Shown piece by piece: positions 3,800 to 47,750 of a DNA stretch of 64,000 bases. The notes below the pieces were generated by a model, which was not told where the DNA came from, did no database searches, and was given only the letters and a program-made list of their open reading frames with translations. Position 1 is the stretch's first letter, and each line of letters opens with the position of its first letter. The position numbers were made by a program, and so were the translations under genes. Origin of the DNA: Macrostomum lignano (lineage: Eukaryota); contig NIVC01001223.1 in the NCBI GenBank assembly GCA_002269645.1, positions 97,186 to 161,185 on the forward strand, written 5' to 3'.

Positions 3800-3833
<34 letters not shown>

Positions 3834-9800: not shown

Positions 9801-9944
9801 GGATCTGGGATCTGGATCTGGGATCTGGATCTGGGATCTGGATCTGGGATCTGGATCTGGGATCTGGATCTGGGATCTGGATCTGGGATCTGGATCTGGG
9901 ATCTGGATCTGGGATCTGGATCTGGGATCTGGATCTGGGATCTG
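6843..9944. repeat. 13-bp satellite GATCTGGGATCTG, ~238 perfect copies (~3.1 kb)
   Basis: Homogeneous array; source of the 1095-aa and 1067-aa artefact ORFs. Confidence 0.98.
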
Positions 9945-11794: not shown

Positions 11795-11970
11795 GCCTTA
11801 GACCTTCGGCCAGCTATAAAGCTGTGGCAAAACAAGCAGTTGTCTATGGCCCAAACTTTGACCAGCTATAAAGCTCTGTGAGAAAACAAGCAGATGTCTA
11901 TGGCCCAACCTTAGACCAGCTATAATTAGGTTGTGTGACAAAACAAGCAGTTGTTTATGGCCAAAGCTCA
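11795..11970. repeat. Three imperfect ~52-bp tandem repeats
   Basis: Repeated CCAGCTATAAAGCT...AAAACAAGCAGTTGTCTATGGCCCAA. Confidence 0.7.
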
Positions 11971-12057
11971 CTAACCTCGTAGAATTTCTAGCTTGGATAC
12001 TTCTCACTTAGCTTGACAAAAGCAGCTATTAAGCATACCCACCTTAACCCGCGTTAC

Positions 12058-12745
12058 TATAGCATTTTGCGTTGCACTTAAGCTTACGGGCAAATCACTT
12101 GATCCTAAGTGGCAGAATTACACTGGCGAGGCAGCTGCCGATCGATTCTATGGTCTCAACTGGTGGCTAGTAGGCAATTTACTTTAGCCTTGGGGCACAG
12201 ACTTAATCCATTTATGCTCTATCGCAATTTGAAAAGCTTTCAATCGGCCGCCCAGTGGGTGGTGTTGTGGCAAGGGTATAATTTTAATCAGTCAATATGA
12301 GCAAATGAGCAAATTGATGACGGCGTCCAGTAACTTCGTATCGCCTTCGGATAGACAAAACAGTCTTAATGTTGACCTGGAATCATCGCGCGACGTCGAC
12401 CGGCCGCTCATCCCTGTCTAGGGTCGATGACGAGGCTGTGCTTTTCATCCCTCATCCTTGACCACGGTCTACGTTGTTGTCCGTCACCAATTCCATCTGG
12501 TGCAGTTTCATAGCTAGCTTTGCTGGCCTCATCTTCCGAGCTCATGTTGCTGCGAGCCTTAGCTTCTAGTTCGCTTTGATAGAGCATGAATGGATTAAGT
12601 CAGTGCCCCCAAGGCTTAAGTAACTTGCCCGGCAGCCAACGGTTTGGGCCATAGACTCGATCGGCAGCTGCCCTCGCCAGTGTAATCCTGCCACTTAGGA
12701 TCAAGTGATTTGCCCGTAAGCTTAAGTGCAACGCAAAATGCTATA
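12058..12745. mobile_element. MITE / foldback element with ~170-bp terminal inverted repeats
   Basis: The first 58 bp (TATAGCATTTTGCGTTGCACTTAAGC...GTGGCAG) are the exact reverse complement of the last 58 bp; similarity continues to ~170 bp. Outermost TA on both sides may be a TA TSD. Confidence 0.85.
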
Positions 12746-13325: not shown

Positions 13326-13428
13326 ATTTGGTTCTTTTAAAAATAATTTCTCGATCTAGCCGTAAAAACGGTTATAAGATTGTTTTAAAATTTATTGAAA
13401 TTTGCTCGTCAGCGAAGTAATGGTAGTG

Positions 13429-14037
13429 GGCTGGTCAGAAGGGAGTGTACACTGTGGGACTGCTAATTAGGGGCTGGTCAGAAGGGAGTGTACACTGTGG
13501 GACTGCTAATTAGGGGCTGGTCAGAATGGAGTGTACACTGTGGGACTGCTAATTAGGGCTGGTCAGAAGGGAGTGTACACTGTGGGACTGCTAATTAGGG
13601 GCTGGTCAGAAGGGAGTGTACACTGTGGGACTGCTAATTAGGGGCTGGTCAGAAGGGAGTGTACACTGTGGGACTGCTAATTAGGGGCTGGTCAGAAGGG
13701 AGTGTACACTGTGGGACTGCTAATTAGGGCTGGTCAGAAGGGAGTGTACACTGTGGGACTTCTAATTAGGGGCTGGTCAGAAGGGAGTGTACACTGTGGG
13801 ACTTCTAATTAGGGCTGGTCAGAAGGGAGTGTTCACTGTGGGACTTCTAATTAGGGGCTGGTCAGAAGGGAGTGTACACTGTGGGACTGCTAATTAGGGG
13901 CTGGTCAGAAGGGAGTGTACACTGTGGGACTTCTAATTAGGGGCTGGTCAGAAGGGAGTGTACACTGTGGGACTTCTAATTAGGGCTGGTCAGAAGGGAG
14001 TGTACACTGTGGGACTTCTAATTAGGGCTGGTCAAGT
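13429..14037. repeat. 42-43-bp minisatellite (GGGCTGGTCAGAAGGGAGTGTACACTGTGGGACTGCTAATTAG), ~14 copies
   Basis: Near-perfect tandem array. Confidence 0.95.
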
Positions 14038-14512
14038 GGGGAGTGTAAAATTGGGTCTCGGACTATTTGGTTTGAAAAAATTAAATATTGTGAACATTCA
14101 TAAAAATCATAGTGTTTTTTGTTATTAAAAAAATTGCACAGAGCTCTCTGTGCAGATTAAAAGTTGATTTAAAAACAAAAAGAATCAAGAATGTCGTAAG
14201 TACAGCTGCATTAGTTAGTTGGTTTAAAAGAGAATGTACTCGTCTACGCATAGAATAAGATTTTATATTTGCACGCAAATATCACAATTATTTAAGATTA
14301 AATTTCATCAAGTGTCTAGAACAGCGACCGTGGACTCAGCAAAGCACTTCTGTAGGATCTGAGACTGCGAGGGGCAGACATTAGCAGTGCTGCTAGACGA
14401 TGTAGCTCGCTGATGTAGTTGGACTTGTGACTGAGCCTGCAATTGCACAGATTATGCAGTATTGTATCCCCAGATCTGCAGTGCATGTCTAACCATCTGT
14501 CTAGACAAGCAA

Positions 14513-17500
14513 CTAGGCCCGTGTTTTCCCTTCCATGTCTGAAGAAAATTGAATAGCAAGGTCAAAATTCCTGATCCCAATCTGAGATCCCAGATTCCCG
14601 ATCCCAATCTGAGATCCCACATTCCTGATCCCAATCTGGAATCCCACATTCCTGATCCCAATCTGAAATCCCACATTCCTGATCCCAATCTGAAATCCCA
14701 CATTCCTGATCCCAATCTGAAATCCCACATACCTGATCCCAATTTTAAATCCCACATACCTGATCCCAATTTTAAATCCCATATTCCTGATCCTAATCTG
14801 AAATCCCACATTGATCCCAATCTGAGATCCCAGATTCCCGATCCCAATCTGGAATCCCGGATTCCTGATCCCAATCTGCAATCCCAGATTCCTGATTCCA
14901 ATCTGAGATTCCAGATTCCTGATCCCAATTTTAAATCCCAGATTCCTGATCCAAATATGAAATCCCACATTCCTGATCCCAATCTGAAATCCCACATTCC
15001 TGATCCCAATCTGAAATCCCACATTCCTGATCCCAATTTTAAATCCCAGATTCCTGATCCTCATCTGCAATCCCACATTCCTGATCCCAATCTGAGATCC
15101 CACATTCCTGATCCCAATCTGAAATCCCACATACCTGATCCCAATTTTAAATCCCATATTCCTGATCCTAATCTGAAATCCCACATTGATCCCAATCTGA
15201 GATCCCAGATTCCCGATTCCAATCTGGAATCCCGGATTCCTGATCCCAATCTGCAATCCCAGATTCCTGATTCCAATCTGAGATCCCAGATTCCTGATCC
15301 CAATTTTAAATCCCAGATTCCTGATCCCAATCTGAAATCCCATATTCCTGATCCAAATATGAAATCCCAGATTCCTGATCCCAATCTGAAAACCCAGATT
15401 CCTGATCCTTATCTGCAATCCCAAATTCCTGATCCCAATTTGAAATCTCACATTTCTGATCCCAATCTGAGATCCCAGATTCCTGATCCTAATCTGAGAT
15501 CCCGGATTCCTAATCCCAATCTGAGATCCCAGATTCCTGATCCCAATTTGAAATCCCACATTTCTGATCCCAATCTGAAATCCCAGATTTCTGATCTTAA
15601 TCTGAGATCCCGGATTCCTGATCCTAATCTGAGATCCCAGATTCCTGATCCCAATTTGAAATCCCACATTCCCGATCCCAATCTGAGATCCCGGATTCCT
15701 GATCCCAATCTGAAATCCAGGATTCCTGATCCTAATCTGTAATCCCAGATTCCTAATCCCAATCTGAAATCCCAGATTCCCGATCCCAATTTTAAATTTC
15801 ATATTTCTGATCCCAATCTGAGATCCCAGTTTCCTGATCCTCATCTGCAATCCCACATTCCTGATCCCAATCTGAGATCCCACATACCTGATCCCAATTT
15901 GAAATCCCACATTTCTGATCCCAATCTGAGATCCCAGATTTCTGATCCCAATCCATAATCCAGGATTCCTGATCCTCATCTGCAATCCCAGATTCCTGAT
16001 CCCAATCTGAAGTCCCACAGTCCTGATCCCAATCTGAGATCCCACGTTCGTGATCCCAATCTGAGATCCCAGATTCCTGATCCCAATTTGTGTGCTCACT
16101 CCTGCCGCCATAGCCCGAAGGCTTCCGATTCCTGTTGGCCGACAGCGAAGAAGCCGAAGAAGAGACCGTCGCCATTGCCAAGTCGTCGTTTCCGCCGCCG
16201 CGACCGACGCCGCCGATGCCGTTAACTCTGCCGCCGTCGCTGCCCGAGACGAACTGCACCGGCGGCAGTCCGACTGGCGACGGATAACGCGTCTGCTGGT
16301 TGTGAAGGCTGCTGGGCTGTTGCTGCTGCTGCTGTTGTTGCTGGGAGACGGGCCGCTGCGGCTGCGACTGCCGCCGGGGATTCTCCGTCCGAAGCGGCGG
16401 CGGCGGTGGGCGCCATTCGGGATCGAGCTCTGAGTCGAATTTTGCTAAGGACGGGGCCGTCGGTCCGAATAAAATGTAGCAGAAATTTGCGCAGCCGCCG
16501 CCGTGGTCGAACGGGTTGATCAGATCCGGGTTGCGCTTTGTGTTGTACAGGTCCTTGATCTGGTGGTTAGGGAGAGGGTTGATGAGAAGTAGCACTAGTG
16601 TTGGCCAGGGCCTTCCCGAGGGTCTGAGAGCCGTGCTACATTTCCCTGGGTGTCTAGAACCTGGCCCAGATCTCTGTAGATTGGGCTAGATCTCCCTGAG
16701 CATCTAGAGACTGTGCTACGAGTAATCACCCGTAGTATCTTCGCTCGTATGGACTGCGCACGCTAGAACACCCTGAATATCTAGAGGCTGTGCTGGATCT
16801 CTGAGGATCTGTAGACTGTGCTAGACTACTCCTGGGTATCTAGAGAATGTGCTAGATCTCTGAGTATCTGGAGGCTGTGCTAGAGATTCTCCACAATCCA
16901 CAGCAGCGCTCACATCCTCATTCGTGGAGGTCTCGCGGCAGATCAGCAGGGTGTGGAAGCCGCCAAGTCCAACCACAGAGAACAAGGAGAAAAATGCCAC
17001 CAAGATGACTACCAGAGTGCAGACGGGAAGATTGAGTTGAGTTAAGGAAAACAAACACTTTAATTGCTGCTTAAAAATATCAAATATGGTAAAACTAGGT
17101 TTAAAAGTATTTTTTGACAAAGGATATCTGGTAGGCGACTCTCTCAGCACCTGGATAAAGTCTCCATTTTTTTGCCTGCTCACTGAAATGATAGAATTGA
17201 AATGCAATAGACATGGTTAGGTAGCAGCGGTTTCATTTAGTATGGCGATAATGATCACTAGTTCAGAAAAAATATAAAATTAAGAAATGGCATCTCGTAA
17301 AAAAACTAATACTCAAACAAAACAAAACTCGAGGAAGAAAATTCAAGTAGAAATTCCATTTTTTCTAAGATCGTTGATTTCCGTGACACCCCAACTCCCA
17401 AAGATCCCAATCTCCATCACACCCCAGCACACCAAAGATCCCAATCCCCGTGACAACCCATGACACAGACCCCAATTCAATTGGGAGACTTCTCAAGAGA

Positions 17501-20500
17501 TCTCATTCTAGTAAATATCAAATTTTCAAAGAAATCACCCATTCTCCAGAGATCTGGATCCAAATCAGTATTGGTGTCTTTTCAAAAGCAAAAATTCCAA
17601 AGTCCAGCTTCCAAATAAGGATCCTTTAATCTGGAAAGTATCCCACTCTGACAAAGAAAATCCGTCCCAACTCAAAGCACTCACGAATAACCAAATTGAT
17701 GCAGCCGAACACCATAATGTAGACACAATAGACGGTCACGCTGGCCAAGAACAAATAAAAATATCGATAATTCCGCCTGCCAACGCAGTTGCCAACCCAC
17801 GGGCAGTGGTGATCGAATCTGTCAACGCAATTGTCGCATGTAGAACAGTGGCTGGCCCTTGGCGGCCGCCACAGCTTGCAGGTCTGGCAGAATTTCAGCT
17901 TGAATAATCGGCCATTGATTCGAATGTCGCGCAATGTCTCGTATTGCGGAACCGTGCTGTGCGAGGCTTGACGTGGGTTTTATTATCGATTTATAGATTT
18001 TGTCAGATTGTGGCTGATTTTGAGCCCGATTAGCCAACCAATATTGACAGTTTTTGAGCCCGATTAGCTAACCAATATTGACAGTTTTTGAGCATAATTA
18101 GCCAACCAATATTGACAGTTTTTGAGCCTAATTAGCCAACCAATATTGGCAGTTTTTGAGCCCGATTAGCCAACCAATATTGACAGTTTTTGAGCCCGAT
18201 TAGCTAACCAATATTGACAGTTTTTGAGCCTAATTAGCTAACCAATATTGACAGTTTTTGAGCCCGATTAGCCAACCAATATTGACAGTTTTTGAGCCTA
18301 ATTAGCCAACCAATATTGACAGTTTTTGAGCCTAATTAGCTAACCAATATTGGCAGTTTTTGAGCCCGATTAGCCAACCAATATTGACAGTTTTTGAGCC
18401 TAATTAGCCAACCAATATTGACAGTTTTTGAGCCCGATTAGCCAACCAATATTGGCAGTTTTTGAGCCTAATTAGCCAACCAATATTGGCAGTTTTTGAG
18501 CCCGATTAGCCAACCAATATTGACAGTTTTTGAGCCCGATTAGCCAACCAATATTGACAGTTTTTGAGCCTAATTAGCCAACCAATATTGGCAGTTTTTG
18601 AGCCCGATTAGCCAACCAATATTGACAGTTTTTGAGCCCGATTAGCCAACCAATATTGGCAGTTTTTGAGCCCGATTAGCCAACCAATATTGACAGTTTT
18701 TGAGCCCGATTAGCCAACCAATATTGGCAGTTTTTGAGCCTAATTAGCTAACCAATATTGACAGTTTTTGAGCCCGATTAGCCAACCAATATTGACAGTT
18801 TTTGAGCCTAATTAGCCAACCAATATTGGCAGTTTTTGAGCCCGATTAGCCAACCAATATTGGCAGTTTTTGAGCCCGATTAGCCAACCAATATTGGCAG
18901 TTTTTGAGCCCGATTAGCCAACCAATATTGACAGTTTTTGAGCCCGATTAGCCAACCAATATTGGCAGTTTTTGAGCCTAATTAGCTAACCAATATTGAC
19001 AGTTTTTGAGCCTAATTAGCTAACCAATATTGACAGTTTTTGAGCCTAATTAGCTAACCAATATTGACAGTTTTTGAGCCCGATTAGCCAACCAATATTG
19101 ACAGTTTTTGAGCCTAATTAGCCAACCAATATTGGCAGTTTTTGAGCCCGATTAGCCAACCAATATTGACAGTTTTTGAGCCCGATTAGCCAACCAATAT
19201 TGACAGTTTTTGAGCCCGATTAGCCAACCAATATTGGCAGTTTTTGAGCCTAATTAGCTAACCAATATTGACAGTTTTTGAGCCTAATTAGCTAACCAAT
19301 ATTGACAGTTTTTGAGCCTAATTAGCTAACCAATATTGACAGTTTTTGAGCCTAATTAGCCAACCAATATTGACAGTTTTTGAGCCTAATTAGCCAACCA
19401 ATATTGACAGTTTTTGAGCCTAATTAGCCAACCAATATTGGCAGTTTTTGAGCCCGATTAGCCAACCAATATTGACAGTTTTTGAGCCCGATTAGCCAAC
19501 CAATATTGACAGTTTTTGAGCCCGATTAGCCAACCAATATTGGCAGTTTTTGAGCCTAATTAGCTAACCAATATTGACAGTTTTTGAGCCTAATTAGCTA
19601 ACCAATATTGACAGTTTTTGAGCCTAATTAGCTAACCAATATTGACAGTTTTTGAGCCCGATTAGCCAACCAATATTGACAGTTTTTGAGCCTAATTAGC
19701 CAACCAATATTGGCAGTTTTTGAGCCCGATTAGCCAACCAATATTGACAGTTTTTGAGCCCGATTAGCCAACCAATATTGACAGTTTTTGAGCCCGATTA
19801 GCCAACCAATATTGACAGTTTTTGAGCCTAATTAGCTAACCAATATTGGCAGTTTTTGAGCCCGATTAGCCAACCAATATTGGCAGTTTTTGAGCCTAAT
19901 TAGCTAACCAATATTGACAGTTTTTGAGCCTAATTAGCTAACCAATATTGACAGTTTTTGAGCCTAATTAGCTAACCAATATTGACAGTTTTTGAGCCTA
20001 ATTAGCCAACCAATATTGACAGTTTTTGAGCCTAATTAGCCAACCAATATTGGCAGTTTTTGAGCCCGATTAGCCAACCAATATTGACAGTTTTTGAGCC
20101 CGATTAGCCAACCAATATTGACAGTTTTTGAGCCCGATTAGCCAACCAATATTGGCAGTTTTTGAGCCTAATTAGCTAACCAATATTGACAGTTTTTGAG
20201 CCTAATTAGCTAACCAATATTGACAGTTTTTGAGCCTAATTAGCTAACCAATATTGACAGTTTTTGAGCCTAATTAGCTAACCAATATTGACAGTTTTTG
20301 AGCCTAATTAGCTAACCAATATTGACAGTTTTTGAGCCTAATTAGCTAACCAATATTGACAGTTTTTGAGCCTAATTAGCTAACCAATATTGACAGTTTT
20401 TGAGCCTAATTAGCTAACCAATATTGACAGTTTTTGAGCCCGATTAGCTAACCAATATTGACAGTTTTTGAGCCTAATTAGCTAACCAATATTGACAGTT

Positions 20501-21659
20501 TTTGAGCCTAATTAGCTAACCAATATTGACAGTTTTTGAGCCTAATTAGCTAACCAATATTGACAGTTTTTGAGCCTAATTAGCTAACCAATATTGACAG
20601 TTTTTGAGCCTAATTAGCTAACCAATATTGACAGTTTTTGAGCCCGATTAGCTAACCAATATTGACAGTTTTTGAGCCTAATTAGCTAACCAATATTGAC
20701 AGTTTTTGAGCCTAATTAGCTAACCAATATTGACAGTTTTTGAGCCCGATTAGCCAACCAATATTGACAGTTTTTGAGCCTAATTAGCTAACCAATATTG
20801 ACAGTTTTTGAGCCTAATTAGCTAACCAATATTGACAGTTTTTGAGCCTAATTAGCTAACCAATATTGACAGTTTTTGAGCCTAATTAGCTAACCAATAT
20901 TGACAGTTTTTGAGCCTAATTAGCTAACCAATATTGACAGTTTTTGAGCCTAATTAGCTAACCAATATTGACAGTTTTTGAGCCCGATTAGCTAACCAAT
21001 ATTGACAGTTTTTGAGCCTAATTAGCTAACCAATATTGACAGTTTTTGAGCCCGATTAGCTAACCAATATTGACAGTTTTTGAGCCTAATTAGCTAACCA
21101 ATATTGACAGTTTTTGAGCCCGATTAGCCAACCAATATTGGCAGTTTTTGAGCCCGATTAGCTAACCAATTTTTGGCGAATTTCAAAACCTCGACGACCA
21201 CCTGAAGTCCCTACAAGTCTATTACATTAGTTGGGTTCTGAGACAGATTAAATGTATTTTACAGTGTAGCTCGTACTTTTCCATGGAAATCAATAAAGTG
21301 CACCCGAATCCAGATTCTCCCTATCTAAAAAATCAAGCTCTAAAAGATGCAAACTCACCCATCTCAGCCTCCATCCAGGCAGCCTCGTCGGGCCCAGCCC
21401 TGGGAATGATGCCCGGATCGCTCAGGGTGGTGCGCAGCAGGCAGGCCAGCACAAAGCCACACTGCAGCACGGCGAAAACTGGCACAGCTGGCGACAGATT
21501 CACTGCCAAAAAACGACAATCGAACGCGAAGAATAGTCCCGAAAACACCACCACCAGAAGCAGGGTTAGGTAGAACACTGACAGGTTCCTAGCGCACACG
21601 CAGCGACCATTGCAGGTGATCCAGCTCTTACCCTTGTACTGCTCCCAGCGCTTTGGCAT
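14513..21659 (-). CDS. ZDHHC9/14/18: DHHC palmitoyl acyltransferase, ZDHHC9/14/18 (Erf2/app) subfamily
   Basis: Exons: 21659-21360; ~17965-17685 (DHHC-CRD: [44 protein letters not shown]); 17182-17128; 17016-16914 ([14 protein letters not shown]); 16559-16100 (NPF motif, low-complexity tail); 14538-14513 (NMEGKTRA*). Phases agree at all junctions except exon1/exon2, where only a weak AAG acceptor fits. Confidence 0.93.
14567..16089. repeat. 27-bp minisatellite (GATCCCAGATTCCTGATCCCAATCTGA) in the last ZDHHC intron
   Basis: About 55 variant units with a ~374-bp internal higher-order duplication (CACATTGATCCC landmark at ~14807 and ~15182). Confidence 0.95.
17017..17127 (-). other. U12-type AT-AC intron (111 nt) in ZDHHC
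   Basis: 5' splice site ATATCCTTTG (17127-17118), branch site TTTCCTTAAC (17050-17041), terminal AC (17018-17017). Removal gives [14 protein letters not shown], colinear without gaps with ZDHHC9-type ETPGTVLEVLICFF (recalled). Confidence 0.9.
18015..21172. repeat. 34-bp minisatellite (ATTGACAGTTTTTGAGCCCGATTAGCCAACCAAT), ~93 copies, ZDHHC intron
   Basis: Tandem array with three variable sites; the right end is dominated by the CCTAATTAGCTAACC variant. Confidence 0.97.
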
Positions 21660-22670: not shown

Positions 22671-25600
22671 TATGTAATAGGCCTAATATTTAAAATAGGC
22701 AGATCCTGACCTGATGGATGAAGCCACTGTTGGCAATAGTTGATACATGTGAATCTGATTTATGAAAATCCCACAAAATTCACCCTTTTAATTTTATGGA
22801 TCCATGCAACAATGATTTAGAAGCTTATATGTGAAGATGGGTATGAAATTTCGTACATACTGAGAATTCATATTGTTTTATTCTCTGGCATTGCACTTTA
22901 AAGTCCTTCGAAAGTATATTTAGCTTTAATGTAAATTAAAAAAATGTCAACCTTAATTATTCAGAAATTTATTCTTCTACTTTTAATATTTTCATTCAGA
23001 AATACAAAACTAAAGTAAAAAATTTAGTTTTAAAAAATTGTCTTAGATTATAGAATTTTTAATTGATTATTTTTTTTAACAATCTAATCTAAGCACGTTC
23101 TGCATACAAGTAATGAGACTATGATGAGTTAGTTAGAAGAAAGGCAATACTTGAAAATACGAAGTAAATTACAAAACTGAAATCCGCCAAATAACAGATT
23201 ACTTCTAAAGTTTATAATGCAAAAGAGGTATATCGTTTTTAAAGAAATAATTTAATAATATTTGTTTATGTAAACTATTTTATTAATCAGTTCTTTTTAA
23301 AATTACAACTATACTTTGTTAAGAAGAGTTGTTCTAATTTTCCGGACTTTTACACTTGAAAATATGACATTTGACATGACAATCAGTCAATGCATTCTTA
23401 TGCAATACAGGTACTAGCCAATACTAGGGACAGGAAAACGAAAAAAAGTTGGAAATTGATTTATTATTCTCTTAGTCCTCGAAAGGCATTATTTTGATTG
23501 GATTAAGTTTTACCACAGACAAAAAAGTCACTTGAATTCAAGAATTCAAATATACATTTAACACTAAAATAGTCGGAACTCGCAGTACTCCAACGTTTGT
23601 TGTTTCACATCAATAGTATTGAGTAGTCCCTGTTGCAATATTTAAAACAATACAACAATTAGTATTGCAGGACACAGACGCATCATTAAAACTTGCGAGA
23701 ACATTTCACATGTCAATCACCTTTTCTCTAATACATCACAGCTATAACTCTAATTCAACGCAACTGGGGAAGGGAGGCAGGGCCACCACTCTTCAGTGGA
23801 GATTCGGAAAAGATGAACGGGTGAACCAAGTGCACATTCGCCAAAATACAGGCCGGCCCCTTTGGTCTTCACCCAAATGCATCCGGTTCAGCCATTAAAT
23901 GCCAACACGAACGAAACAGAAGCAGAAAAAGAAAACCTTACTTTGGATAGCTTAAGAAAGGGGTAAGCTGCTTAATTTTACAAGTAAAAAAGTATTTTAG
24001 AAAGTTTTTTGTTTTACTATGTATTTGTAAAGCGCGCACATTTGGCCGAAGGGTCTCCCTAAAACACGCCCCGCACCGCCCCAGCAGCGCTACACGTTAT
24101 AACAATTTGGTTTGTAAGACTTTGCAAAATAAGTTTTATGCTAAGATAAAAATTTTAATTAAATGCATTTATTTTATTAGAAGTAGAAAATCCTAAGTTT
24201 AAAGAATTTTTAGCAGAAAGCGCACTAGACTTGTCAACAGGTATTCAACTTTACCGTGTTACATTAGTTTGTTGAATCGTGAATAGAAAATAACACGTGC
24301 TTATATAATACGTTGAATCTAATACACTTATACACGGTCATTTTGTTAGGAGCTCCACTCATGATGAAGCTCTCTGAATATCTAAGCTAACACCAACGGT
24401 AAAGTAATTACATTAAGACAATTCTAAACTAACCAACAAGCAATATACACGCTTCAAGTATCTAACCAAAGAACTAGAAAACCAACAAGTCCAGGTAAGC
24501 TACTTTAGTCATCTAGCGTAGCAAAGCGAAAGTAAAGCCGTAGGCCCCCACAACAGTGTCAATAACTTAATGTATCTTTGGTTCTCTTTCAACAAGAAAT
24601 ACCGTCTGCCTGCTGAGTAAACGAAGTGGTTGTAACTACATTTCATCTGCTATTTAATAGCATAACTTGGTTAGCCTAGCCCTAGGTCTAGGTTATAGCC
24701 AAAATTTCACTCGAATGTTGTTACAAGCCTTTTTTTAATTTAGCGGCAGATTTTGCATCTTTAACGCCCCCAAATTTTCTGGAATTTTTTTCACCTACAC
24801 TTGCACTTTTTTACTCTGAATCTCTGATGTTATTTTTTATTATTTCTCCTGCATTTGATTTATATTTAATGTCTAATGCATTATTCGATTGTATATAGTA
24901 TTGATTATAGTTGGCTCATTTCATTTTTCAGACACTAAACATAAATAATTAATTCAACAATATGCCAGTAATAAAGTACATTTTTATGATAGTAACAAAT
25001 TAAAACAGCATATTTTTTCAAAGTCTATATTAACCAATATAATTAGATGGCTTAGAAAAAATACACAGTAAGCAAAATAGCACATATTCCAGATTGAAAA
25101 AAGGACAAGTTCTAATAACAGGGAACACAAAAATTAAAAAGTAACAGGGATATATTAGAATTTAACATTTCAAGAGAACAAAAAAGTGCTTTTCAAAAAT
25201 GTTATAACAGAAAAAGTTGTAACAGTGCCATTTACTTAAAAACAAGAAAAAACATTATTAAACTAAAAGACTATTTACACTTAATTAGATCTTACTCTTT
25301 TAAATTTGGAAAAAAAGGCAAAAATGTTCAAAGTTGCAAAAAATATTGTTTTTTTATTCTCAAATAGACAAGTAGGCAAAATAGGCAAAATGGATTCTCA
25401 ATAGACAAAATAGAAAAAAGTAACAAATAGTAACATCTGATGCATAAAGTGCCATTTTATATGAAATTTTTCTTGCTATATTGAAAGTAAAATAAATGTT
25501 GGCATTATAGCAATGAAGTAAGTTGAACACTTAATAATATAAATAACTTTAAGCATACAAACAGAAAAGGTTTAGACATAAAAAGTTTAAGTAAATACAT

Positions 25601-26189
25601 AGCCATTTTCTTATCAGCAAACAATTTAATAATAATATGATGATTAGCTATAAATGAAAACCTCTAAACTATGATCTCATTGCCATTACCATTATGACAT
25701 GGTTGTGCATTGTGCACTCTTGGAATTCACTGTCCTTAACATTTTCATGCAAACAGACAGTTCAAAAGCACTCAGGTCCCAATACCTGACTCAGCACCCC
25801 TATCTAGCCTATCTATTCTCCATACTCATGAACATTATCATGTACTCAATGTACCAAAATCTGTTTCATCAGTCAATAAATAGGCACTGCCACATGCTTT
25901 TTTCACCTTAGTGAAACAAACTTACCAAGAAACAGGCATACAAACACAAGCTCATTGCTATACTATATACTACAAGCTATTTTTCTTTTAATCTATTTCA
26001 CAGATTCACACAACTCTTTATTCAAAGTCCACTTCTTGCAGGGCTTTTTATGAAATGTAAATGCCCATTTGAAAATAATCATCAGTACTCTGCTATATAT
26101 AATAAACGAGCTATGCTAGAAATTAGCTAAATTATTATTACCACAGGACGAAAATACAACAGTTTCGTAGCTTCAGAGTTGATAGAAAA

Positions 26190-29100
26190 TTAACCTTTCG
26201 GCTGACGTTTGTATATAACTAGTCGAGCATCTGACGAAATATTTTTCAGCAAAGACGTAGAAGTGCTTAGCTCTGTGGTCATTAGATCGTCCAGCAAGTA
26301 GCATATGTCACCTTTTGATGGAAATACATAAGCGACGTAATGACCTTCGTCGACTCGTTCTCCCAGGTGCACAATCACACTTTAGAGGCAATAGCGCTGA
26401 TTGTTATAGTCAATTTCTGGCGTTAAATCGAAGCCCACTCGGTTCTTGACAATAGTTGCCTGGCTTCTCAAGAGCCTGTTCACGACGAAGCACAGGAGAG
26501 GTGGCGCATTTTGAGGAGTTCTGCTATGAACGCAGCTACTTGTCTGACAGGCTGTGCATGTGATGTCATCAGACTCGTCCGGTCGTAGTGCCGCATTCAC
26601 AAGCTGAATCAGCTGCTGTCCTTCAACTGGTTGAACCACCACGAATGTTTCATGCAAACTTTCAGTAGTCGCGGCATTATTGCACCGGAGACATAGGGTG
26701 GACCCGCCGAGCTAAAATAATAAAGCCAAACAGCTGAGACGGAATTGAAAACATCGATTTAAAGTGCCTGTACTCTCTTACTGCCATCTATGCTGTACGT
26801 GTCCGATCCTGGATTCATATTTGTTTACATGTATTTGCCTCTTTTTACTACATTAGTTCCCTATGATATTGTCGTTTCAAATGGTTTCCGTTCAAAAAGT
26901 AAAGCAAGTTTCTGTACTCGTAAGTGCTTTTTGAAATTTAGAAACGAGAAGTATTACCTGAATTCTAAACTGGCGACGAATAGTCTGCAGCTTTTGAGAA
27001 ATGAGCACGAAAAATTCAAAGCAGTCGTTATATTCGTTGGTATTTATTTGACCAGCCGTACAGCATTCTTCCAATGCAGTGTTGTACAAATATTCGCTGA
27101 ATCCAGATCTGCTCGAAATGTTGGCCAAGAGTCGTATAAGAAAGGACGAATTCACGGCTGTTTCAGAAAAATTTCTCCCTGACAATGCCGCACCAACTGC
27201 GTGAAGACTGGCGTTGAACCAACAGAGTTTTCCATTACGATTGGGTAGGCCGAATGGACGATAGCCTGATGTCGATAGCGCCGAAGCTTCGACAGTAACA
27301 AAACTGGCGACATGATCAGAACAATCAACAAAAGCATGAGCGGCTGGCTCGTTTATCACTGTTGGCAGTGGCGGATCTAGGATTTTATTTAAGGTGGGCG
27401 GTCCAAGTTTGTGGCGCAACATGAGTATGAGGGGCGCCAATTTTTAAGCTAGGGGCGCAAAAAATGCGTGTAGGGGGCGAAAAATCAAGTTTAAAGGGCA
27501 CAAACTTAGGTTTTTTGGGGGGGGGGCAATATGTTTCATCCAGCTGTTTCGGGGGGGGGGGGGGCGCTCCCCCCCCCCCCCCCCCCCTAAATCCGCCCCT
27601 GACTGTTGGTATTCGTGGAAACTCACCATTGCTACGGTTAGCAGACTCACAAGTTATAGATTCATGTGCACGTTCATGACGCCAAAGCTTATTTTGTTCG
27701 ATGCGTTCCTCTCGAGAAAATCCTTTGCGTCGACGTCCCTTATTCGATCGAGAAGCTTTTAAGATTTTGCCGATTCCTACAGGCTTCTCGGCAACTCGGG
27801 GCAATCCAATTTTTCGTCTAACCGCTGCGATATGCGAACACGATTGAGCAGAGACACAAGAACACGAAGCAACGCCGTTGCTAAATGTCACAACATTATT
27901 TCGTCCGGCAACGTTAGTCACTATGAAGTTACCAAGAGTAGGGTTGAATGAAACTTTATGTTGCTCACTAAGCAAGCTGATCCGTGTCGACTGTTCGTTG
28001 TCGTCTAGATCGACATTAACTCGCACAGATTTGTGGCTAGATTCTCCAACGGGCTGGTGAACAGGAGTACCAGTAGCATCATTGGACAATGAAGGCCCCG
28101 TGCCACCTGACTCATTGCTGTTGCTATCATAGAAACTCATGTTGGGACGTATGACAGTCACTTTAATCGCACCAATTTCTCGAATTTCTCGAGTCGCTGA
28201 AGTCTGAGAGTGCCGGCGTTGAATGTTCGCAGCTATTTGTTCTAACGACAACGATGGAGAGAGTGTTACAGTTTCGGGCGACTGTTGTAGATGTTGGAAC
28301 TCCGGCTTTAGTGTAGTTTCCTTGGCCACACAAACCACGAAGAATTTCGTTCCTGTAGTATCGAGAAGTTTGGTAAAGTCCGACAATGCAGTCATCGATC
28401 GTTGCATCCTTGAAGTTAAGCACACGCTTGAGCATTGCGTTTATTGATTCTGATTGGTTCTGAGTTACACCGGTAACTGGGCAGTAGTGCGATTGTAGAA
28501 TCCACTTTGCAAAAAATTTAGGGATTAATGGGTGAATTTGATTGTCAAAATAAGCGGCAAAACTTGGATTCCAGTTTTTTTTGCAGCTTGCATACTGGGC
28601 ATTGTACTGCTCGATGCTGTCTGTTTCTAGCAGGGAGAGTAGATCTGCTGAAATCATGTCTTCATCAGCCGATGTTCCACCGTTCTTGCGAATCCAGAAC
28701 CGGACGTCCCGCTTCAGATGGTTCCAGCATCCCAAAAATCGGATATTGGGGAAGACAGAAGCCATCGAATTTCTCAGCCCAATTTCTCCATCCATAACGC
28801 ATGCCACATTAGTAGTTGCCAATGCAGGAAGCGAGGATTTCACTTCTTGCCACAAAAGTTTGTGGCGAGCCTCGAGCTTTCGATGGTGAATGAGAAAAAA
28901 GGCTGGGCAAACCGGATTGTTAATGAAAATTGGTAATCGAATTACAAGAGGTGAGACTAGTGCTCTTGTCATCTCAAATCCAGTATCATACGACAATAGC
29001 TGATTCCTATCGTCCAACAATAAAATGCGATTTAGCAAGTCCAGAAGCTCAGGACAGCCAGCTGGAATAGCTAAGTCAGGAAACGTCTGGATTGTACGAA

Positions 29101-31119
29101 TGAATCCTGGTAGTTCATTGGCAAGAATGTGAATGTTCATAATTTCGTCTTTTGAAAGCATATTTGGCATAGAGCTCTTAAGGTTCTCGACTTGCTTTAG
29201 ATTCCGAGGATTACGCACTGGGTTGCTGCTCTGACCTAGATAAAGTCGATATGCTTGCGAAGGAGCAAGGGTCGAAAGTTCGGCTCGAAGATTGCCGAGC
29301 ACCGATGGGCTAGTCCGCATAAAAGTTCCACAGTGCTTGCGGTTTCCGTGATACACCATGTTAGCAGGTGGTTGCACTGATGGATTTCCGATATAGTGGA
29401 TCAGTGTCTTGCTGAAATAAGAACATTAGAAGCAGTTAGTATATTAAACTGTCAAAAACAGGATGCTACACCCGATTTTATTCAACATTTTATAATTTAT
29501 ATTTACCTTGAATCTTTAGAGCCATTAGAATTGATTAATTGATACGCTTGTCTGATGAACAAGCGGGACATTTGTCCAGAGGTGTCTCTGGACAAATAGC
29601 GGTACTTATATAGAGTTGGACGTATTCTAAAAAGTTATTATTAATTTTGTCAAAAATTATAATTTGCTAGATTAAATTCGAAAGCGCAAGGTTTTATATT
29701 GTATATATGTAGCTGTAGCATTTTATAAAAAAAACATAATATTGTTCTTAAAGAACATACCAGAAACAACTTGTTTGGTGTTATAAGCATATCTTATGGC
29801 TATGTCAATGTGTTAATGGATTTATGCATATTTCAATAAGTTGATTCTAAAAATAATTTTTATATATTATTTTTGGAGACAAAATGCCAATTATTTTAAC
29901 AAAACTTTTATACTTTTGGATGGAAAAAACGTTTTGTATGAATTTATATGAGGAATTTGTTTATAAATTATATTCTTATTTTATTTAAATTAGTTCATGT
30001 ACTACACTAAAGCCTATAACCTATATTATCTAAAATAATTTTGACTTTGCTAATAATCTAGCCCCACTCTAATACAAGCTTATTTGCATAAAAACATTCA
30101 GAACAGTCAAAATCAATAGCTTTAATTGTGGCAGCAAGAATGTACACAACTGGCAACACCAATGCAGCCACACTGGAAACCACCCAACCTTATCTAGCTG
30201 GGGTGGGGTGGTGCATACCAAGCTAGTCGGCTTGCTAAGTCGGGGCAGGAGGGGGTTGGCAAAGCCTATCATGCCACACCACCTTTTTGTACCTCCCTAG
30301 GCCCCTCAATCTTGTGCTTTTAGTAATTTTACAAATATACATACAGAGAAGCACAAACTCTTCACTGCCATTTTATCTATTGAAATAAAAAGACCTTTTG
30401 TCTCCAGCTATTGTATACCAACATCATGCACAGGCCTTAACAATTAATCTTATTATCATTTACAAGAGACTATTTTGTAGGAGCTAAAATTAGTTTTATA
30501 ACTTATCAAAGCCTATATTAACACAATCAATTTTAAGACTTTTAATGAAGTATTTATGGGTTAACCAATATTAATATTAAAAAGAAAGATTGTGTCAATA
30601 TTTAAAATATTTATTCAAAAAAGAAAATATAATGCAATGCTAGTAATAAGACATTTACTAATAAAAAATCTGAAAATATCCAGTTTTATTGACATTAAGC
30701 AGCAAGAAATAATGTTTCTATGATCTATCTAGATCATTGGAAGCAGAACCTTGTCACAGGTATACAGAATTTACCTATTTACTAAAATTCTACATTTAAT
30801 TTTACATTACATTTTATATTTAATATATAAGATACAGCAAACAAATGCTGTATAACCTAATAGAAACTGTTTCAGTACCATTTGAAATAGTGCTTTTAGA
30901 CCTATTGTGTCTGGATGATCAGAATTTTTACCTCGGCAGTCGGTCTCGTCCTCCGTCTTTCCATAAATAGCCATCCGCCTTCCAGTCATCTGACTCGGAC
31001 GTCGATTTAGGTTTATACAGATAAAGGGACTCTGTGGGTCTATATACAGGTGAGTCGATAACACAGGCTTGGGAGGAGTGCTCTTTTAATAGCTTTAAAG
31101 CAATAGCTGTCGATAGCAT
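26190..31119 (-). pseudogene. Disrupted MULE transposase-SWIM-USP (peptidase C19) fusion gene, ~1,013 aa when repaired
   Basis: Exons 31119-30932, 29626-29507, 29411-26958, 26711-26190, all GT-AG with matching phases. DDE motifs SYDTGF, CVMDGE, CWNH, NQSESIN; SWIM CSC..SCSH; USP Cys box GLPNRNGKLCWFNASL, NDCFEFF, CLRC/CTAC pairs, His box VIVHLGERVDEGHYVAYV, YLLDD, LVIYKR. Lesions: frameshift ~28311, MITE at 27366-27601, TAA at 26382-26384. Confidence 0.9.
27366..27601. mobile_element. hAT-type MITE (236 bp) nested in the MULE coding sequence
   Basis: TIRs CAGTGGCGGATCTAG / CTAAATCCGCCCCTG; perfect 8-bp TSD ACTGTTGG at 27358-27365 and 27602-27609. Excision restores the frame (RIPTVINEPAAH). 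Confidence 0.93.
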
Positions 31120-31628
31120 TTAAAACTTTATTAAGAATAATTCATTTCTTGCAATAAAATAAAAATTAAGCTGCTTGACACGCAAGTTGCTGGCATGCAC
31201 GTGCAGCCCCCATACGATAAATTTAAATGATGGTAAGTATCAATGTTCGCTCTGATTAAAAATGTATATATATATATAAAATTATTAAAATAGTTATTAT
31301 TTTACACTAACATCAATCAGTTTTCTCAGCAATCAAACACTGCATTGACAAAAACGTTATAATGTGTAGCGCTGCTGGGGCGGTGCGGGGCGTGTTTTAG
31401 GGAGACCCTTGGCCGAATTTTTCGTGACCGAGCCGGCCGATCGTACACGAGCAAGCGAGAGTAAATTAAATACGAAAAAAAGATTGACACCAATTGTGTA
31501 CTATTTTTAAGTAGCAAAATATATCTAATTTAGAGTCTATCAAATAACAAACGTATCTTATAAATTTACTAGTACTACAATTCAAAAGACGTACAGAGAA
31601 GTTACATTCCGTTTTTCAAGCTTTCTAA

Positions 31629-40888
<9,260 letters not shown>

Positions 40889-41400: not shown

Positions 41401-41834
41401 GGTTGATACATGGATGATTATGCAAACAGACCGCAATTACAAGCTAAGAAAATATTACTATTGATGTATTTCACACAACCTGTCAATGTGTGTCTGTGTT
41501 TAAGTAATTTTCTTCTCTACAAAGCCTCAGTGATATTTTTTCTGCTTTTTTATTCCTACATATTTCAATAGAATCACCTATCGCTTGCTGTCAATATAGA
41601 ACAGGCCCACCATATATAGACCACTATTGTCCATGAAGCATTGAAATAAATTATCTATATAGTCAGGAAATCGTTTGTTCTTTGATCATTACTTAACTGT
41701 TCGTATTACCATTTTTTCTTTAAATTTTTACTTCTGTTAGACTTCTCTGTAAACTAAGGGTTACAGTGGAGATGTTACCTATCCCATGTAGACAATCCGG
41801 TCCCTCATTCTATGGTAGTCCTCATCCTATGGCT

Positions 41835-42620
41835 ATGATGGTCCTTCTCATCCTATGATGGTCCTTCTCATCCTATGATGGTCCTTCTCATCCTATGGTG
41901 GTCCTTCTCATCCTATGGTGGTCCTTCCATCCTATGATGGTCCTTCCATCCTATGGTGGTCCTTCCATCCTATGATGGTCCTTCTCATCCTATGGTGTTT
42001 CTTCTCATCCTATGGTGTTTCTTCTCATCCTATGGTGGTCCTTCTCATCCTATGGTGGTCCTTCTCATCCTATGGTGGTCCTTCTCATCCTATGATGGTC
42101 CTTCTGATTCTATGGTGGTCCTTCTCATCCTATGGTGGTCCTTCCATCCTATGATGGTCCTTCTCATCCTATGGTGTTTCTTCTCATCCTATGGTGGTCC
42201 TTCTCATCCTATGGTGTTTCTTCTCATCCTATGGTGGTCCTTCCATCCTATGATGGTCCTTCCATCCTATGATGGTCCTTCTCGTCCTATGGTGGTCCTT
42301 CTCATCCTATGGTGTTTCTTCTCATCCTATGATGGTCCTTCTCATCCTATGGTGTTTCTTCTCATCCTATGGTGGTCCTTCCATCCTATGATGGTCCTTC
42401 TCATCCTATGATGGTCCTTCTCATCCTATGGTGTTTCTTCTCATCCTATGGTGGTCCTTCCATCCTATGATGGTCCTTCCATCCTATGGTGTTTCTTCTC
42501 ATCCTATGGTGGTCCTTCTCATCCTATGGTGGTCCTTCCATCCTATGGTGGTCCTCATCTTATGGCGGTCCTTCTTATCCTATTGTGGTCCTTCTCATTC
42601 TATGGTGGTCCATCTCATCT
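41835..42620. repeat. 19-20-bp minisatellite (TTCTCATCCTATGGTGGTCC)
   Basis: About 40 variant copies. Confidence 0.95.
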
Positions 42621-42753: not shown

Positions 42754-45143
42754 ATGGACAGCAGCGGATCGGCCATGGAAGCCAGCTTCATCAAATCCCA
42801 GGTGTGCGGCTGGCCCGAGCCGCGCCAGCTCGAACTGATCGTGGGCGAGCTGACCGGCACAGACCAGCCGGGCGAGCTCTGCCTGGCCCGGCTGTCCGGC
42901 CTGGCCGGTCCAGTCGGCGGCCTGCTGCGGATTCAATTGGACAGCGGCGAATGCGATGAAATCGGCGATGATGTTGGCGAGGCCGACTTGGCCGATCGGT
43001 TGCGCCGGTTCTGCCGATCCCGACGCGACCTTCGCCTGCTGCCGATCCTGTGCTGGCGGGACCGGCTGCCGGCTTTGGAGAGGGCGCTGGCCCGCCTGCT
43101 GGGCGGCCGGTCCGGCCCGTGGACTCCGGCTGAGGTGAGCAAGCGGCATCAGCTCCGGCGCATCCTGCCGATTGAACCGGTGGCCACTGAGCTGTGCATC
43201 CGGTTCTGCAAGCAGCCGAAGCAGTCGGCCGCCTCAGTGGCTATGACCAACCGCCTGCTAGCTGATTTAAAGCACTGCATTGGCCAGGATCCGAATTTCT
43301 CTCATTTGGCTCTGACTGGCCGGCTGAAGAACTGTAAATTGCATCAAGGCGACTGCGCCTATTATAGATGTCAGGTGAGATAAATACCTGTCACTGCACT
43401 CTACAAATGCTGAGTTGCCCTCCCATGGTTACTGAGAATAACTTCTGATAGTACCCTAATCCCTACTGATAGTCGCCCCCTAATTCCTGACAATTTGAGA
43501 ATCTTCCCCTAAAGTCTACTGAGAATCGCCCCCCTAATCCCTACTGAGATCCTACTGAGAATCGCCCCCTAATCCCTACTGAGATCCTACTGAGAATCGC
43601 CCCCTAATCCCTACTGAGATCCTACTGAGAATCGCCCCCTAATCCCTACTGAGAATCGCCCCCTAATCTCTACTGAGAATCGTCCCCTAATCCCTACTGA
43701 GAATCGCCCCTAATCCCTACTGAGAATCGTCCCCTAATCCCTACTGAGAATCGTCCCCTAATCCCTACTGAGAATCGCCCCTAATCCCTACTGAGAATCG
43801 CCCCTAATCCCTACTGAGAATCGTCCCCTAATCCCTACTGAGAATCGTCCCCTAATCCCTACTGAGAATCGTCCCCTAATCCCTACTGAGAATCGCCCCT
43901 AATCCCTACTAAGAATCGTCCCCTAATCCCTACTGAGAATCGCCCCTAATCCCTACTAAGAATCGTCCCCTAATCCCTACTGAGAATCGCCCCTAATCCC
44001 TACTGAGAATCGCCCAATAATACCTACAGAGAATCGCGCCTAATCCCTACTGAGAATCGTCCCCTAATCCCTACTGAGAATCGCCCCTAATCCCTACTGA
44101 GAATCGCCCCTAATCCCTACTGAGAATCGCCCAATAATACCTACAGAGAATCGCGCCTAATCCCTACTGAGAATCGTCCCCTAATCCCTACTGAGAATCG
44201 CCCCTAATCCCTACTGAGAATCGTCCCCTAATCCCTACTGAGAATCGCCCCTAATCCCTACTGAGAATCGTCCCCTAATCCCTACTGAGAATCGCCCCTA
44301 ATCCCTACTGAGAATCGCCCCTAATCCCTACTGAGAATCGCCCCTAATCCCTACTGAGAATCGCCCCTAATCCCTACTGAGAATCGTCCCCTAATCCCTA
44401 CTGAGAATCGCCCCTAATCCCTACTGAGAATCGCCCCTAATCCCTACTGAGAATCGTCCCCTAATCCCTACTGAGAATCGCCCCTAATCCCTACTGAGAA
44501 TCGCCCCTAATCCCTACTGAGAATCGTCCCCTAATCCCTACTGAGAATCGCCCCTAATCCCTACTGAGAATCGCCCCTAATCCCTACTGAGAATCGCCCA
44601 ATAATACCTACAGAGAATCGCGCCTCCTCTCACTGTTATCGTACTGGCCATTCGTGCTACTACCAGTAGTGAATGCATTTATTCCTTTACACAATCCTCT
44701 CGCAGCTGATGGCCAGCGCCATATTTGATGCATTCCGTGATGTCGTCCCGCCGCCGCCGCCGCCCAACTGCGCCACCGCTGCCGCCGTAGCAGCGGACTC
44801 CAACAGTAGAGCGGTCGCGAGTTCGAATCCTGTCGTTTCTAACAGCGAGAACGACAGCTCGGAGACCGAAGCTGAATCAGTTTGCACGCCGTTCCCCCGT
44901 CCGGAGGAGATGCCAGCTCCAGACCTGCTTCTCATGGCCGGTTTCTGTCTCGACGCCGACTCTGACGGCCCGCCGCTGATGCCGCCGCCGGCGCTTCAGC
45001 AGCAGCCAAAGTCTCGCGTTCCGCCAATCGTAGACGTCAGTTCTCTCGGGTCTGCACTCGTCGCCTGTCGGGATATTCGACTGGGCGATCCGAATTTTGT
45101 TAATGACGACACGCCTGACAGGCCCTATGTGCTTAATGACTGA
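42754..45143 (+). CDS. Two-exon protein of unknown function (~352 aa)
   Basis: Exon 42754-43374 (donor CAG|GTGAGA, phase 0) and exon 44706-45143 (acceptor ctcgcAG). GC-rich, open in frame, acceptor-like AG just before the ATG. No family recognised. Confidence 0.7.
43500..44625. repeat. 23-24-bp minisatellite (ATCCCTACTGAGAATCGCCCCTA) in the intron of the unknown gene
   Basis: About 48 copies. Confidence 0.95.
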
Positions 45144-45204
45144 TAGATGTTGGCTCGCGTTCAGTGCCTGACCAGATAGCCCAGTGGATTCGGAGTTTAT
45201 TTAA

Positions 45205-46606: not shown

Positions 46607-47750
46607 CTGTGTCACTCTCCCTCCCTGTGTCACTCTCCCTCCCTGTGTCACTCTCTCCCTCCCTGTGTCACTCTCCCTCCCTGTGTCACTCTCCCTCCTT
46701 GTGTCACACCAGCTCCCTGTGTCACTCTCCCTCCCTGTGTCACTCCAGCTCCCTGTGTCACTCTCTCCTTCCATGTGTCACTCTCCCTCCCTGTGTCACT
46801 CTCCCTCCCTGTGTCACTCTCCCTCCCTGTGTCACTCTCCCTCCTTGTGTCACACCAGCTCCCTGTGTCACTCTCCCTCCCTGTGTCACTCTCCCTCCCT
46901 GTGTCACTCTCTCCCTCCCTGTGTCACTCTCCCTCCCTGTGTCACTCTCCCTCCCTGTGTCACTCTCCCTCCCTGTGTCACACCAGCTCCCTGTGTCACT
47001 CTCCCTCCCTGTGTCACTCCAGCTCCCTGTGTCACTCTCTCCTTCCATGTGTCACTCTCCCTCCCTGTGTCACTCTCCCTCCCTGTGTCACTCTCCTTCC
47101 CTGTGTCACTCTCTCCCTCCCTGTGTCACTCTCCCTCCCTGTGTCACACCAGCTCCCTGTGTCACTCTCCCTCCCTGTGTCACTCTCCCTCCCTGTGTCA
47201 CTCTCCCTCCTTGTGTCACACCAGCTCCCTGTGTCACTCTCCCTCCCTGTGTCACTCTCCCTCCCTGTGTCACTCTCCCTCCCTGTGTCACTCTCCCTCC
47301 CTGTGTCACTCTCCCTCCCTGTGTCACTCTCTCCCTCCTTGTGTCACACCAGCTCCCTGTGTCACTCTCCCTCCCTGTGTCACTCTCCCTCCCTGTGTCA
47401 CTCTCTCCCTTCATGTGTCGCTCTCTCCCTCCCTGTCACTAGCTCCCTCCCTGGGTTACTCTAGTTCCTTCCCTGTGTCACTCCAGCTCCCTCCATGTGT
47501 CACTTTCTCCTTCCCTGTGTCACTCCAGCTCCCTCCATGTGTCACTTTCTCCTTCCCTGTGTCACTTTAGCTCCCTCCATGTGTCACTTTCTCCTTCCCT
47601 GTGTCACTCCAGCTCCCTCCATGTGTCACTTTCTCCTTCCCTGTGTCACTCCAGCTCCCTCCATGTGTCACTTTCTCCTTCCCTGTGTCACTTTAGCTCC
47701 CTCCATGTGTCACTTTCTCCTTCCCTGTGTCACTCCAGCTCCCTCCATGT
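46607..47750. repeat. 18-20-bp minisatellite (CTGTGTCACTCTCCCTCC) ending in a 42-bp dimeric variant
   Basis: Tandem array; 42-bp period from ~47471. Confidence 0.95.

Follow-up and report, generated by a model that had tools for sequence, protein, structure and literature searches.

A stretch of 64,000 nucleotides from Macrostomum lignano (contig NIVC01001223.1, positions 97,186 to 161,185 of the forward strand; hereafter the window) contains a Mutator-like element (MULE) of 7,358 bp at 24051-31408, whose gene lies on the minus strand. We think it very probable that this gene encodes a MULE transposase fused in frame to a full-length ubiquitin-specific protease (USP/C19) domain. A preliminary description, made from the sequence alone, had proposed a transposase joined to a complete USP; an above-cutoff match to Pfam UCH, an hhalign probability of 96% and a second example, the protein P0120, all support that structure. 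The window copy carries three disabling lesions, described in the last section. When these are repaired, the order of the protein is a CG-1-like N-terminal domain, a MULE DDE core, a CxCx5CxH (SWIM-type) finger, a basic linker and the USP/C19 domain, encoded as follows.

31119-30932, minus strand: exon 1, with the start codon and the first half of the CG-1-like N-terminal domain; contains DDWKADGYLWKDGG
29627-30931, minus strand: intron 1, GT..AG
29626-29507, minus strand: exon 2, second half of the CG-1-like N-terminal domain; alignment with the related proteins P0008 and P0009 unbroken
29412-29506, minus strand: intron 2, GT..AG
29411-26958, minus strand: exon 3
27610-29411, minus strand: proximal exon 3, with the MULE DDE core, SWIM-type finger and basic linker; homologues at E 1e-80 to 1e-60 pass Pfam MULE
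26958-27365, minus strand: distal exon 3, with linker and USP N-lobe; Cys box RPFGLPNRNGKLCWFNASLHAV, aligning with USP36/USP14 and P0120
26712-26957, minus strand: intron 3, GT..AG, phase 0, six residues ahead of the first CxxC
26711-26190, minus strand: exon 4, USP fingers and palm, natural stop at 26190-26192; matched by Pfam UCH, the PDB profile search and hhalign

The gene model is supported because homologue alignments run uninterrupted over the junctions of exons 1, 2 and 3, which are crossed by single alignments to P0008 (query residues 5-663) and P0009 (9-663). The exon 3/4 junction is spanned by the Pfam UCH match. Once a nested miniature inverted-repeat transposable element (MITE) is excised, the SWIM finger, the linker and the USP Cys box fall in one exon and one frame. 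The single four-exon gene of the preliminary description is thus borne out by canonical GT-AG introns and by homologue alignments across the junctions. Its coding length of 3,042 nt (1,013 aa plus stop) is reproduced when the MITE is removed and two nucleotides are restored; an alternative repair by a 1-nt deletion gives 3,039 nt.

The transposase part is recognized through its relatives. Matched directly to Pfam, the window protein remains below threshold for MULE (PF10551; 15.1 bits against a cutoff of 27.6, E 0.033), for Transposase_mut (PF00872; 16.5 bits against a cutoff of 21, E 0.004) and for SWIM. Thus, of the three Pfam families that the preliminary description suggested searching for in the repaired protein, UCH scored above its cutoff, and MULE and SWIM did not. 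The window protein matches many proteins over residues ~5-665 at E 1e-80 to 1e-30 and 25-40% identity; P0001 (1.2e-80) is among them, and many pass PF10551. Because homologues at E 1e-80 pass Pfam MULE, the window transposase can be assigned to the MULE superfamily. The residues expected of the catalytic core and finger are at these positions.

28985-28987, minus strand: DDE residue D245, in the conserved YDT motif
28790-28792, minus strand: DDE residue D310, in the conserved D-E motif
28448-28450, minus strand: DDE residue E424, in the conserved NxSES motif
27832-27864, minus strand: SWIM-type finger CSCVSAQSCSH, residues 619-629

A CWNH motif is also present, in columns that are conserved among relatives. 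The columns of the SWIM finger are near-invariant in relatives (C570, C572, C578 and H580 of P0004), two of which, P0005 and P0006, reach about 19-20 bits with Pfam SWIM. At the N-terminus, the match of the window protein to CG-1 (PF03859) is weak (E 0.11). CG-1 is the DNA-binding domain of CAMTA transcription factors, and we found no paper in the full-text literature that links CG-1 or CAMTA to Mutator transposases. Several relatives, among them P0008, P0009, P0030, P0044, P0048 and P0105, score above the CG-1 gathering score, with positions 7-114 of the 116-position profile covered; P0009 scores 36.5 bits, P0030 31.6 bits and P0105 136.7 bits over repeated copies.

The USP domain and a second fusion

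We infer a USP fold in the C-terminal part of the window protein from three comparisons. Pfam UCH (PF00443) matches residues 809-1001 with 39.5 bits in the whole protein and 43 bits in the domain alone, against a cutoff of 23.9; this match lies in 26190-27260, the region in which the preliminary description had made its reading depend on a UCH match. Alignment by hhalign to two bona fide USPs, to which the domain is about 24% identical, gives a probability of 96.2% (E 2.6e-9) over 242 co-linear columns that extend from the Cys box to the catalytic Asp. Finally, a profile of the window and P0120 USPs searched against the PDB returns USP36 (8.8e-6) and USP14 (1.6e-4), then USP25, 28, 15, 8, 7, 12 and 2, and aligns both the Cys box and the His box; the sole non-USP in this search is the deubiquitinase TssM. 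The predicted catalytic and zinc-binding residues are listed below, and every one of them (Cys, His, LLDD and two CxxC pairs) sits at the coordinates at which it was first described.

27222-27224, minus strand: catalytic Cys751, in RPFGLPNRNGKLCWFNASLH
26682-26693 and 26547-26558, minus strand: two CxxC pairs (zinc ribbon)
26340-26342, minus strand: catalytic His963, in the His box YCL*SVIVHLGERVDEGHY
26286-26291, minus strand: catalytic Asp in LLDD (the DD), aligning with the (F/N)DD of USP14 and USP36

The PROSITE His box pattern PS00973 is Y-x-L-x-[SAG]-[LIVMFT]-x2-H-x-G-x4,5-G-H-Y. The window His box conforms to this pattern, with the catalytic Asp downstream, and shares with cellular USPs the form Y-x-L-x-S-V-x2-H-x-G-x5-G-H-Y.

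A search of a 1.84-billion-protein library gave 1,707 matches to the window protein, and we examined the best 150. In one of these 150, a single open reading frame (ORF) holds a MULE core, a SWIM finger and, after them, a USP Cys box, WRPSGLPNFGETCWFNSGIQCV. This protein, P0120, is 628 aa long and comes from the Logan assembly of run SRR24204725, where it lies on a 3-kb contig (L001). The L001 ORF stops at a GT donor, which is followed by a 197-nt intron (2631-2827) and by an exon that reads C-x2-C … C-x2-C before the contig ends. In both the window and L001 the intron is in phase 0 and lies exactly six residues ahead of the first CxxC Cys; the two transposases are about 23-26% identical. Both proteins have a CWFN Cys box, and that of P0120, GLPNFGETCWFNSGIQ, is canonical in spacing and matches positions 2-22 of the UCH profile (E 0.014). 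Because so distant a protein has the same fusion with an identical intron position, the combination of MULE and USP appears to be an architecture and not an accident. It would be either old or exchanged between lineages, and in neither case a one-off capture.

Other searches recovered no further example. The USP domain alone, searched against 5.8 billion proteins, gave one match at E<=10, a USP at E 7.7. Two scans of JGI metagenome contigs, one using the USP domain and the other the USP profile of two sequences, yielded no relative, and a profile of the window protein and P0120 retrieved MULE transposases only, with no extra USP fusion, in the protein search. We rejected P0148 (3,205 aa, from the representative library), which surfaced via a repeated USP match, as an unrelated ORF that is not a transposon protein. 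It consists of ten identical 321-aa USP units in tandem, USP36/42/17-like, and is perhaps an oddity of assembly or of a tandem array. The protein nearest in a rough neighbor-joining tree, P0002, was also set aside: its C-terminal module is unreadable, the 2.46-kb contig ending 60 nt past the stop.

Several points weigh against a fusion to a complete USP. Only one other USP-bearing MULE was found, it is partial and on a 3-kb contig, with its USP visible only as far as the second CxxC, and no intact copy was found. The window and P0120 transposases are neither sisters nor neighbors in the neighbor-joining tree; since they are not sister lineages by transposase, a single origin of the fusion is not established. 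The window Cys box, GLPNRNGKLCWFNASLH, can be aligned with those of USP36 and USP14 and is atypical: the oxyanion Asn and the Cys are one residue further apart than is canonical, and H replaces Q after the Cys. The N-lobe that holds it gives no Pfam UCH match by itself. Finally, AlphaFold2 run without an alignment on the USP domain gave an unusable model (pLDDT 34).

The Cys box bears directly on one alternative, in which the fusion is real and the USP is not a deubiquitinase. The domain could instead bind ubiquitin or act as a scaffold, process another ubiquitin-like protein (Ubl) such as ISG15 or NEDD8, or be a self-processing protease. The Cys-box positions for which the PROSITE USP signature requires N/A/S/M and Q hold K and H in the window protein, E and Q in P0120, as this alternative might lead one to expect. 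Inactive USP-like and VTD-like domains do exist (PMC9741609). Nonetheless, Cys, His and Asp are all kept in the window, the P0120 Cys box and its oxyanion Asn spacing are canonical, and the Ulp1 and OTU modules of relatives are also of catalytic type with intact motifs. We consider loss or change of deubiquitinase activity unlikely on these grounds.

Proteases at one position in an animal MULE clade

The relatives of the window transposase form an animal MULE clade, with Mytilus edulis and Ptychodera flava among the named sources. The usual layout in this clade is a CG-1-like N-terminus, MULE core, SWIM finger, basic linker, Ulp1/C48 protease and PHD finger. In a Pfam census of 42 long relatives, MULE was matched in 30, Peptidase_C48 in 19, CG-1 in 11, PHD in 10 and UCH in 0. 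Nine related loci (L001-L009) were inspected for C-terminal modules, with the following outcome.

L003, L004, L006, L009: Ulp1 downstream of the transposase
L007, L008: no protease module seen
L002: contig too short to tell
L001: USP
L005: OTU inside the terminal inverted repeats (TIRs)

The L005 element (ENA ERZ25072258, contig ctg7747, 7351-12906, ~5.5 kb) is the locus of P0007, the closest match to the window transposase at 39% identity. Its OTU ORF (11899-12462) matches PF02338 at E 4e-10, with 40.7 bits against a cutoff of 23.3, and is separated by ~2 kb from the transposase ORF upstream, to which it may or may not be spliced. The L005 TIR starts with GGGAGTCACTAAAACCCGG, which resembles the window start GGGTCTCCCTAAAACACGC, and the 9-mers that flank the element are not identical. 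The window protein itself has no match to Peptidase_C48 (PF02902) at E<=1, and we rejected a Ulp1-carrying MULE of the KI-MULE type for want of a C48 domain. By these domain matches, one animal MULE clade apparently carries Ulp1/C48 (with PHD), OTU or USP at the same C-terminal position, depending on the lineage.

This interchange speaks to a further alternative, in which the USP is a passenger, a host fragment captured in the manner of a Pack-MULE and in frame by chance, with no role in transposition. MULEs are known to take up host fragments, just two examples of the fusion are at hand, and the window USP is damaged and its Cys box atypical. Passenger capture is nevertheless improbable. The element retains a full transposase, with which the USP shares an exon and a reading frame, and the USP domain is entire, including its catalytic triad and zinc ribbon. 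A ~26% identical transposase shows the same fusion with the same intron; other proteases of ubiquitin or Ubls occupy the slot in relatives; and the USP is very divergent from cellular USPs, as the one match at E 7.7 in 5.8 billion proteins indicates. Classification of the element itself as a Pack-MULE was rejected because it has a full-length transposase gene and a complete USP fused in frame. An artefact of the gene model, in which the USP exons form a separate gene, either a second one of the element or one of the host, whose product is not joined to the transposase, is highly improbable: the model does rest on genomic sequence and not on transcripts, and the OTU ORF of L005 does lie ~2 kb from its transposase ORF, but the USP Cys box shares exon and frame with the SWIM finger and linker in the window (MITE excised) and in P0120, and every USP exon is within the boundaries set by the TIRs and the target site duplication (TSD).

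Possible roles of the protease and its known counterparts

General knowledge of MULEs suggests that the N-terminal domain would bind the TIRs, that the DDE core would cleave and join DNA, and that the basic linker, which resembles a nuclear localization signal, would direct the protein to the nucleus. In this way the transposase could bring its own ubiquitin- or Ubl-deconjugating enzyme to the site of transposition. There, the transposase or transpososome might be stripped of ubiquitin, or else chromatin and repair factors close by might be, with the outcome that the complex would not be extracted or degraded, or that the element would not be silenced. Because unrelated folds that remove ubiquitin or Ubls share one slot, deconjugation in cis at the transpososome is the most likely function for which the protease would have been selected.

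Among specific forms of this idea, we tentatively prefer one in which the protease keeps the transposase or transpososome from being extracted or degraded in a ubiquitin-dependent manner. The preliminary description had put forward, as possible roles, resistance to proteasomal removal and erasure of marks such as H2A-Ub. Protection from proteasomal degradation has been proposed for the deubiquitinases of Helitrons (PMC9741609). Alternatively, the protease may modulate ubiquitin/SUMO-dependent repair signalling, which has also been proposed (PMC2836005), or it may counter SUMO- or ubiquitin-dependent silencing.

Proteases of this kind have been described in several groups of transposons. Ulp1 occurs in MULEs of plants (KI-MULEs), hydra and lancelet, and OTU or Ulp1 in Ginger1 (PMC2836005); Helitrons carry OTU and Helentrons VTD (PMC2836005, PMC9741609). 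The preliminary description had named Ulp1 in MULEs and OTU in other DNA transposons, which agrees with these papers. A 2019 survey of Mutator diversity makes no mention of proteases (PMC6446971). We found no description of a MULE with USP/C19 in the full-text literature, a search that Repbase and Dfam lay outside. The earlier suggestion of novelty stands to the extent that no report of MULE with USP was found. It was too strong in that a Trichomonas vaginalis protein, XP_001314237.1, in which Peptidase C19 is fused to transposase_11, had already been mentioned in 2010 (PMC2836005). Because of this precedent, the pairing of a USP with a transposase is not unprecedented.

The closest counterparts are the Ulp1/C48 MULEs: all are of the same superfamily, and the animal ones found here are of the same clade too. 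The animal Ulp1/C48 MULEs share with the window element a CG-1-like N-terminus, MULE core, SWIM finger, KSGRKxPR-type basic linker and C-terminal thiol protease. Unlike them, the window protein has a USP/C19 protease (clan CA, ubiquitin-type) in place of Ulp1/C48 (clan CE, SUMO-type), and it lacks a PHD finger. Ginger1 families swap a C-terminal OTU or Ulp1, with or without PHD, much as the clade of the window element does; they differ in a Gypsy-integrase-like transposase and another TSD, and no USP is reported in them (PMC2836005). In Helitrons and Helentrons a deubiquitinase is likewise encoded in the transposition protein, but that protein is a rolling-circle RepHel and not a DDE cut-and-paste enzyme, and the deubiquitinases are OTU and VTD, not USP (PMC9741609). 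The Trichomonas protein resembles ours in combining a C19/USP-type hydrolase with a DDE DNA transposase, whereas its transposase is IS4/IS5-like (PF01609) and not a MULE, and its host is a protist (mentioned in PMC2836005). Cellular USPs, of which the nearest structures are USP36, then USP14 and USP25/28, have the Cys box, CxxC zinc ribbon, His box and Asp in the same canonical order. The window USP differs from them in being very divergent, in its CWFN Cys box and in being joined to a transposase.

A broader interpretation is possible, though we think it less likely than not. The USP-MULEs (window element and P0120) could be an undescribed lineage that completes a set of three mechanistically unrelated thiol proteases, Ulp1, OTU and USP, in the slot of one clade; deconjugation of ubiquitin or Ubls could be a generic selected need of MULE transposition or anti-silencing; and the N-terminus of the clade could be homologous to the CG-1 domain of CAMTA. 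Were the CG-1 homology true, it would give the CAMTA family a link to transposons, as for WRKY/GCM1 and FAR1. The point of interest is the USP as a third interchangeable protease class in one MULE clade, and not a transposase bearing a deubiquitinase as such. Several transposon superfamilies have independently gained ubiquitin- or SUMO-stripping enzymes, whose benefit to the element is so far undemonstrated. Interchange among Ulp1, OTU and USP amounts to a natural experiment and argues that the activity outweighs the particular fold. This locus, a dead copy, is of limited value, but the clade supplies matched elements with which to probe transposase protection, repair signalling where the element is excised or inserted, and SUMO/ubiquitin silencing.

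The window copy and its surroundings

The element in the window is, in all likelihood, a recently inserted, now defective autonomous MULE. Its limits are marked by TIRs and a TSD, both of which we confirm at the positions first reported.

24042-24050, no strand: left TSD copy, 9 bp, TTGGCCGAA, identical to 31409-31417
24051-24103, plus strand: left TIR, starts with GGGTCTCCCTAAAACACGCCCCGCACCGCCCC, matching the right end
24104-26189, minus strand: AT-rich non-coding stretch inside the element, 3' of the gene; no ORF >70 aa, GC ~31%
31356-31408, minus strand: right TIR, matching the left end
31409-31417, no strand: right TSD copy, 9 bp, TTGGCCGAA, identical to 24042-24050

The TIRs are ~53 nt long, with the outermost 45 nt identical and 52/53 positions matching overall (one mismatch). 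Their 32-nt terminus has two exact occurrences in the window and none in 100 shuffles, and there are no further TIR copies elsewhere in the window. The perfect 9-bp TSD, together with the TIRs, agrees with the TIRs and 9-11 bp TSD that characterize the MULE superfamily, and it shows that the element was inserted by cut-and-paste via a 9-bp staggered cut. A domesticated gene was rejected as a classification in view of the TIRs, the TSD and the disabling mutations.

The motif ACACG (CGTGT on the other strand) occurs twice in each TIR, 30 nt apart, at 24064-24068 and 24094-24098 on the left and at the mirror-image positions on the right. Boxes of the CGCG/CGTG type are bound by the CG-1 domains of CAMTA factors. 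If that preference is right, the ACACG motifs could, as a speculation, be candidate binding sites of the CG-1-like domain. The motif is not evident in the L005 TIR.

The lesions of the window copy are a nested MITE, one frameshift and one stop, and all three of those named in the preliminary description were located.

27366-27601, no strand: nested hAT-like MITE, 236 bp, TIRs CAGTGGCGGATCTAGG / CAGGGGCGGATTTAGG, with a TSD on both sides
27358-27365 and 27602-27609: TSD of the MITE, 8 bp, ACTGTTGG
28271-28330, minus strand: interval within which the frameshift maps
26382-26384, minus strand: in-frame TAA stop, on an x position of the His box

Excising the MITE with one copy of its TSD (244 bp) puts the flanking frames in register again. 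For the frameshift, a 2-nt deletion between 28311 and 28310 is the best reading, since with two bases put back the protein reads GNYTLKPEF, the G-x-Y-x-L-[KR]-P-x-F (G.Y.L[KR]PEF) motif of relatives. With the MITE, the 2-nt deletion and the TAA stop, the window copy is dead and the protein cannot be made. The termini of the MITE are hAT-like (CAGTG…/CAGGG…), and it has poly-G and poly-C runs inside. It interrupts the linker that joins the SWIM finger to the USP domain, and it is the sole copy in the window.

In the window as a whole, minisatellite arrays are unusually abundant and long (37 Tandem Repeats Finder rows, periods 13-43 nt). Examples are a 13-mer in 238 copies and a 34-mer in 93 copies, and the arrays account for most of the long 'ORFs' in the program-made list. 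The arrays include those listed here.

1755-2997, 5352-5999, 6844-9944, 13428-14047, 14567-16087, 18018-21170, 36980-37522: minisatellite arrays, among others
38309-39445, 41833-42619, 43621-44625, 45204-47735, 51622-52173, 57253-57791: minisatellite arrays, continued, among others

No Rfam family was found in the window. Two apparent host genes are present, both on the plus strand and both GC-rich (~55-60%) against AT-rich intergenic surroundings. One, at 3224-4075, encodes a zinc-finger protein of the C2H2 type that has tracts of poly-Q, poly-H and poly-A. The other, at 60495-61955, encodes an M24 aminopeptidase-P-like protein, of which a 486-aa exon matches Peptidase_M24 (E 3e-35), Creatinase_N_2 and M24_C.

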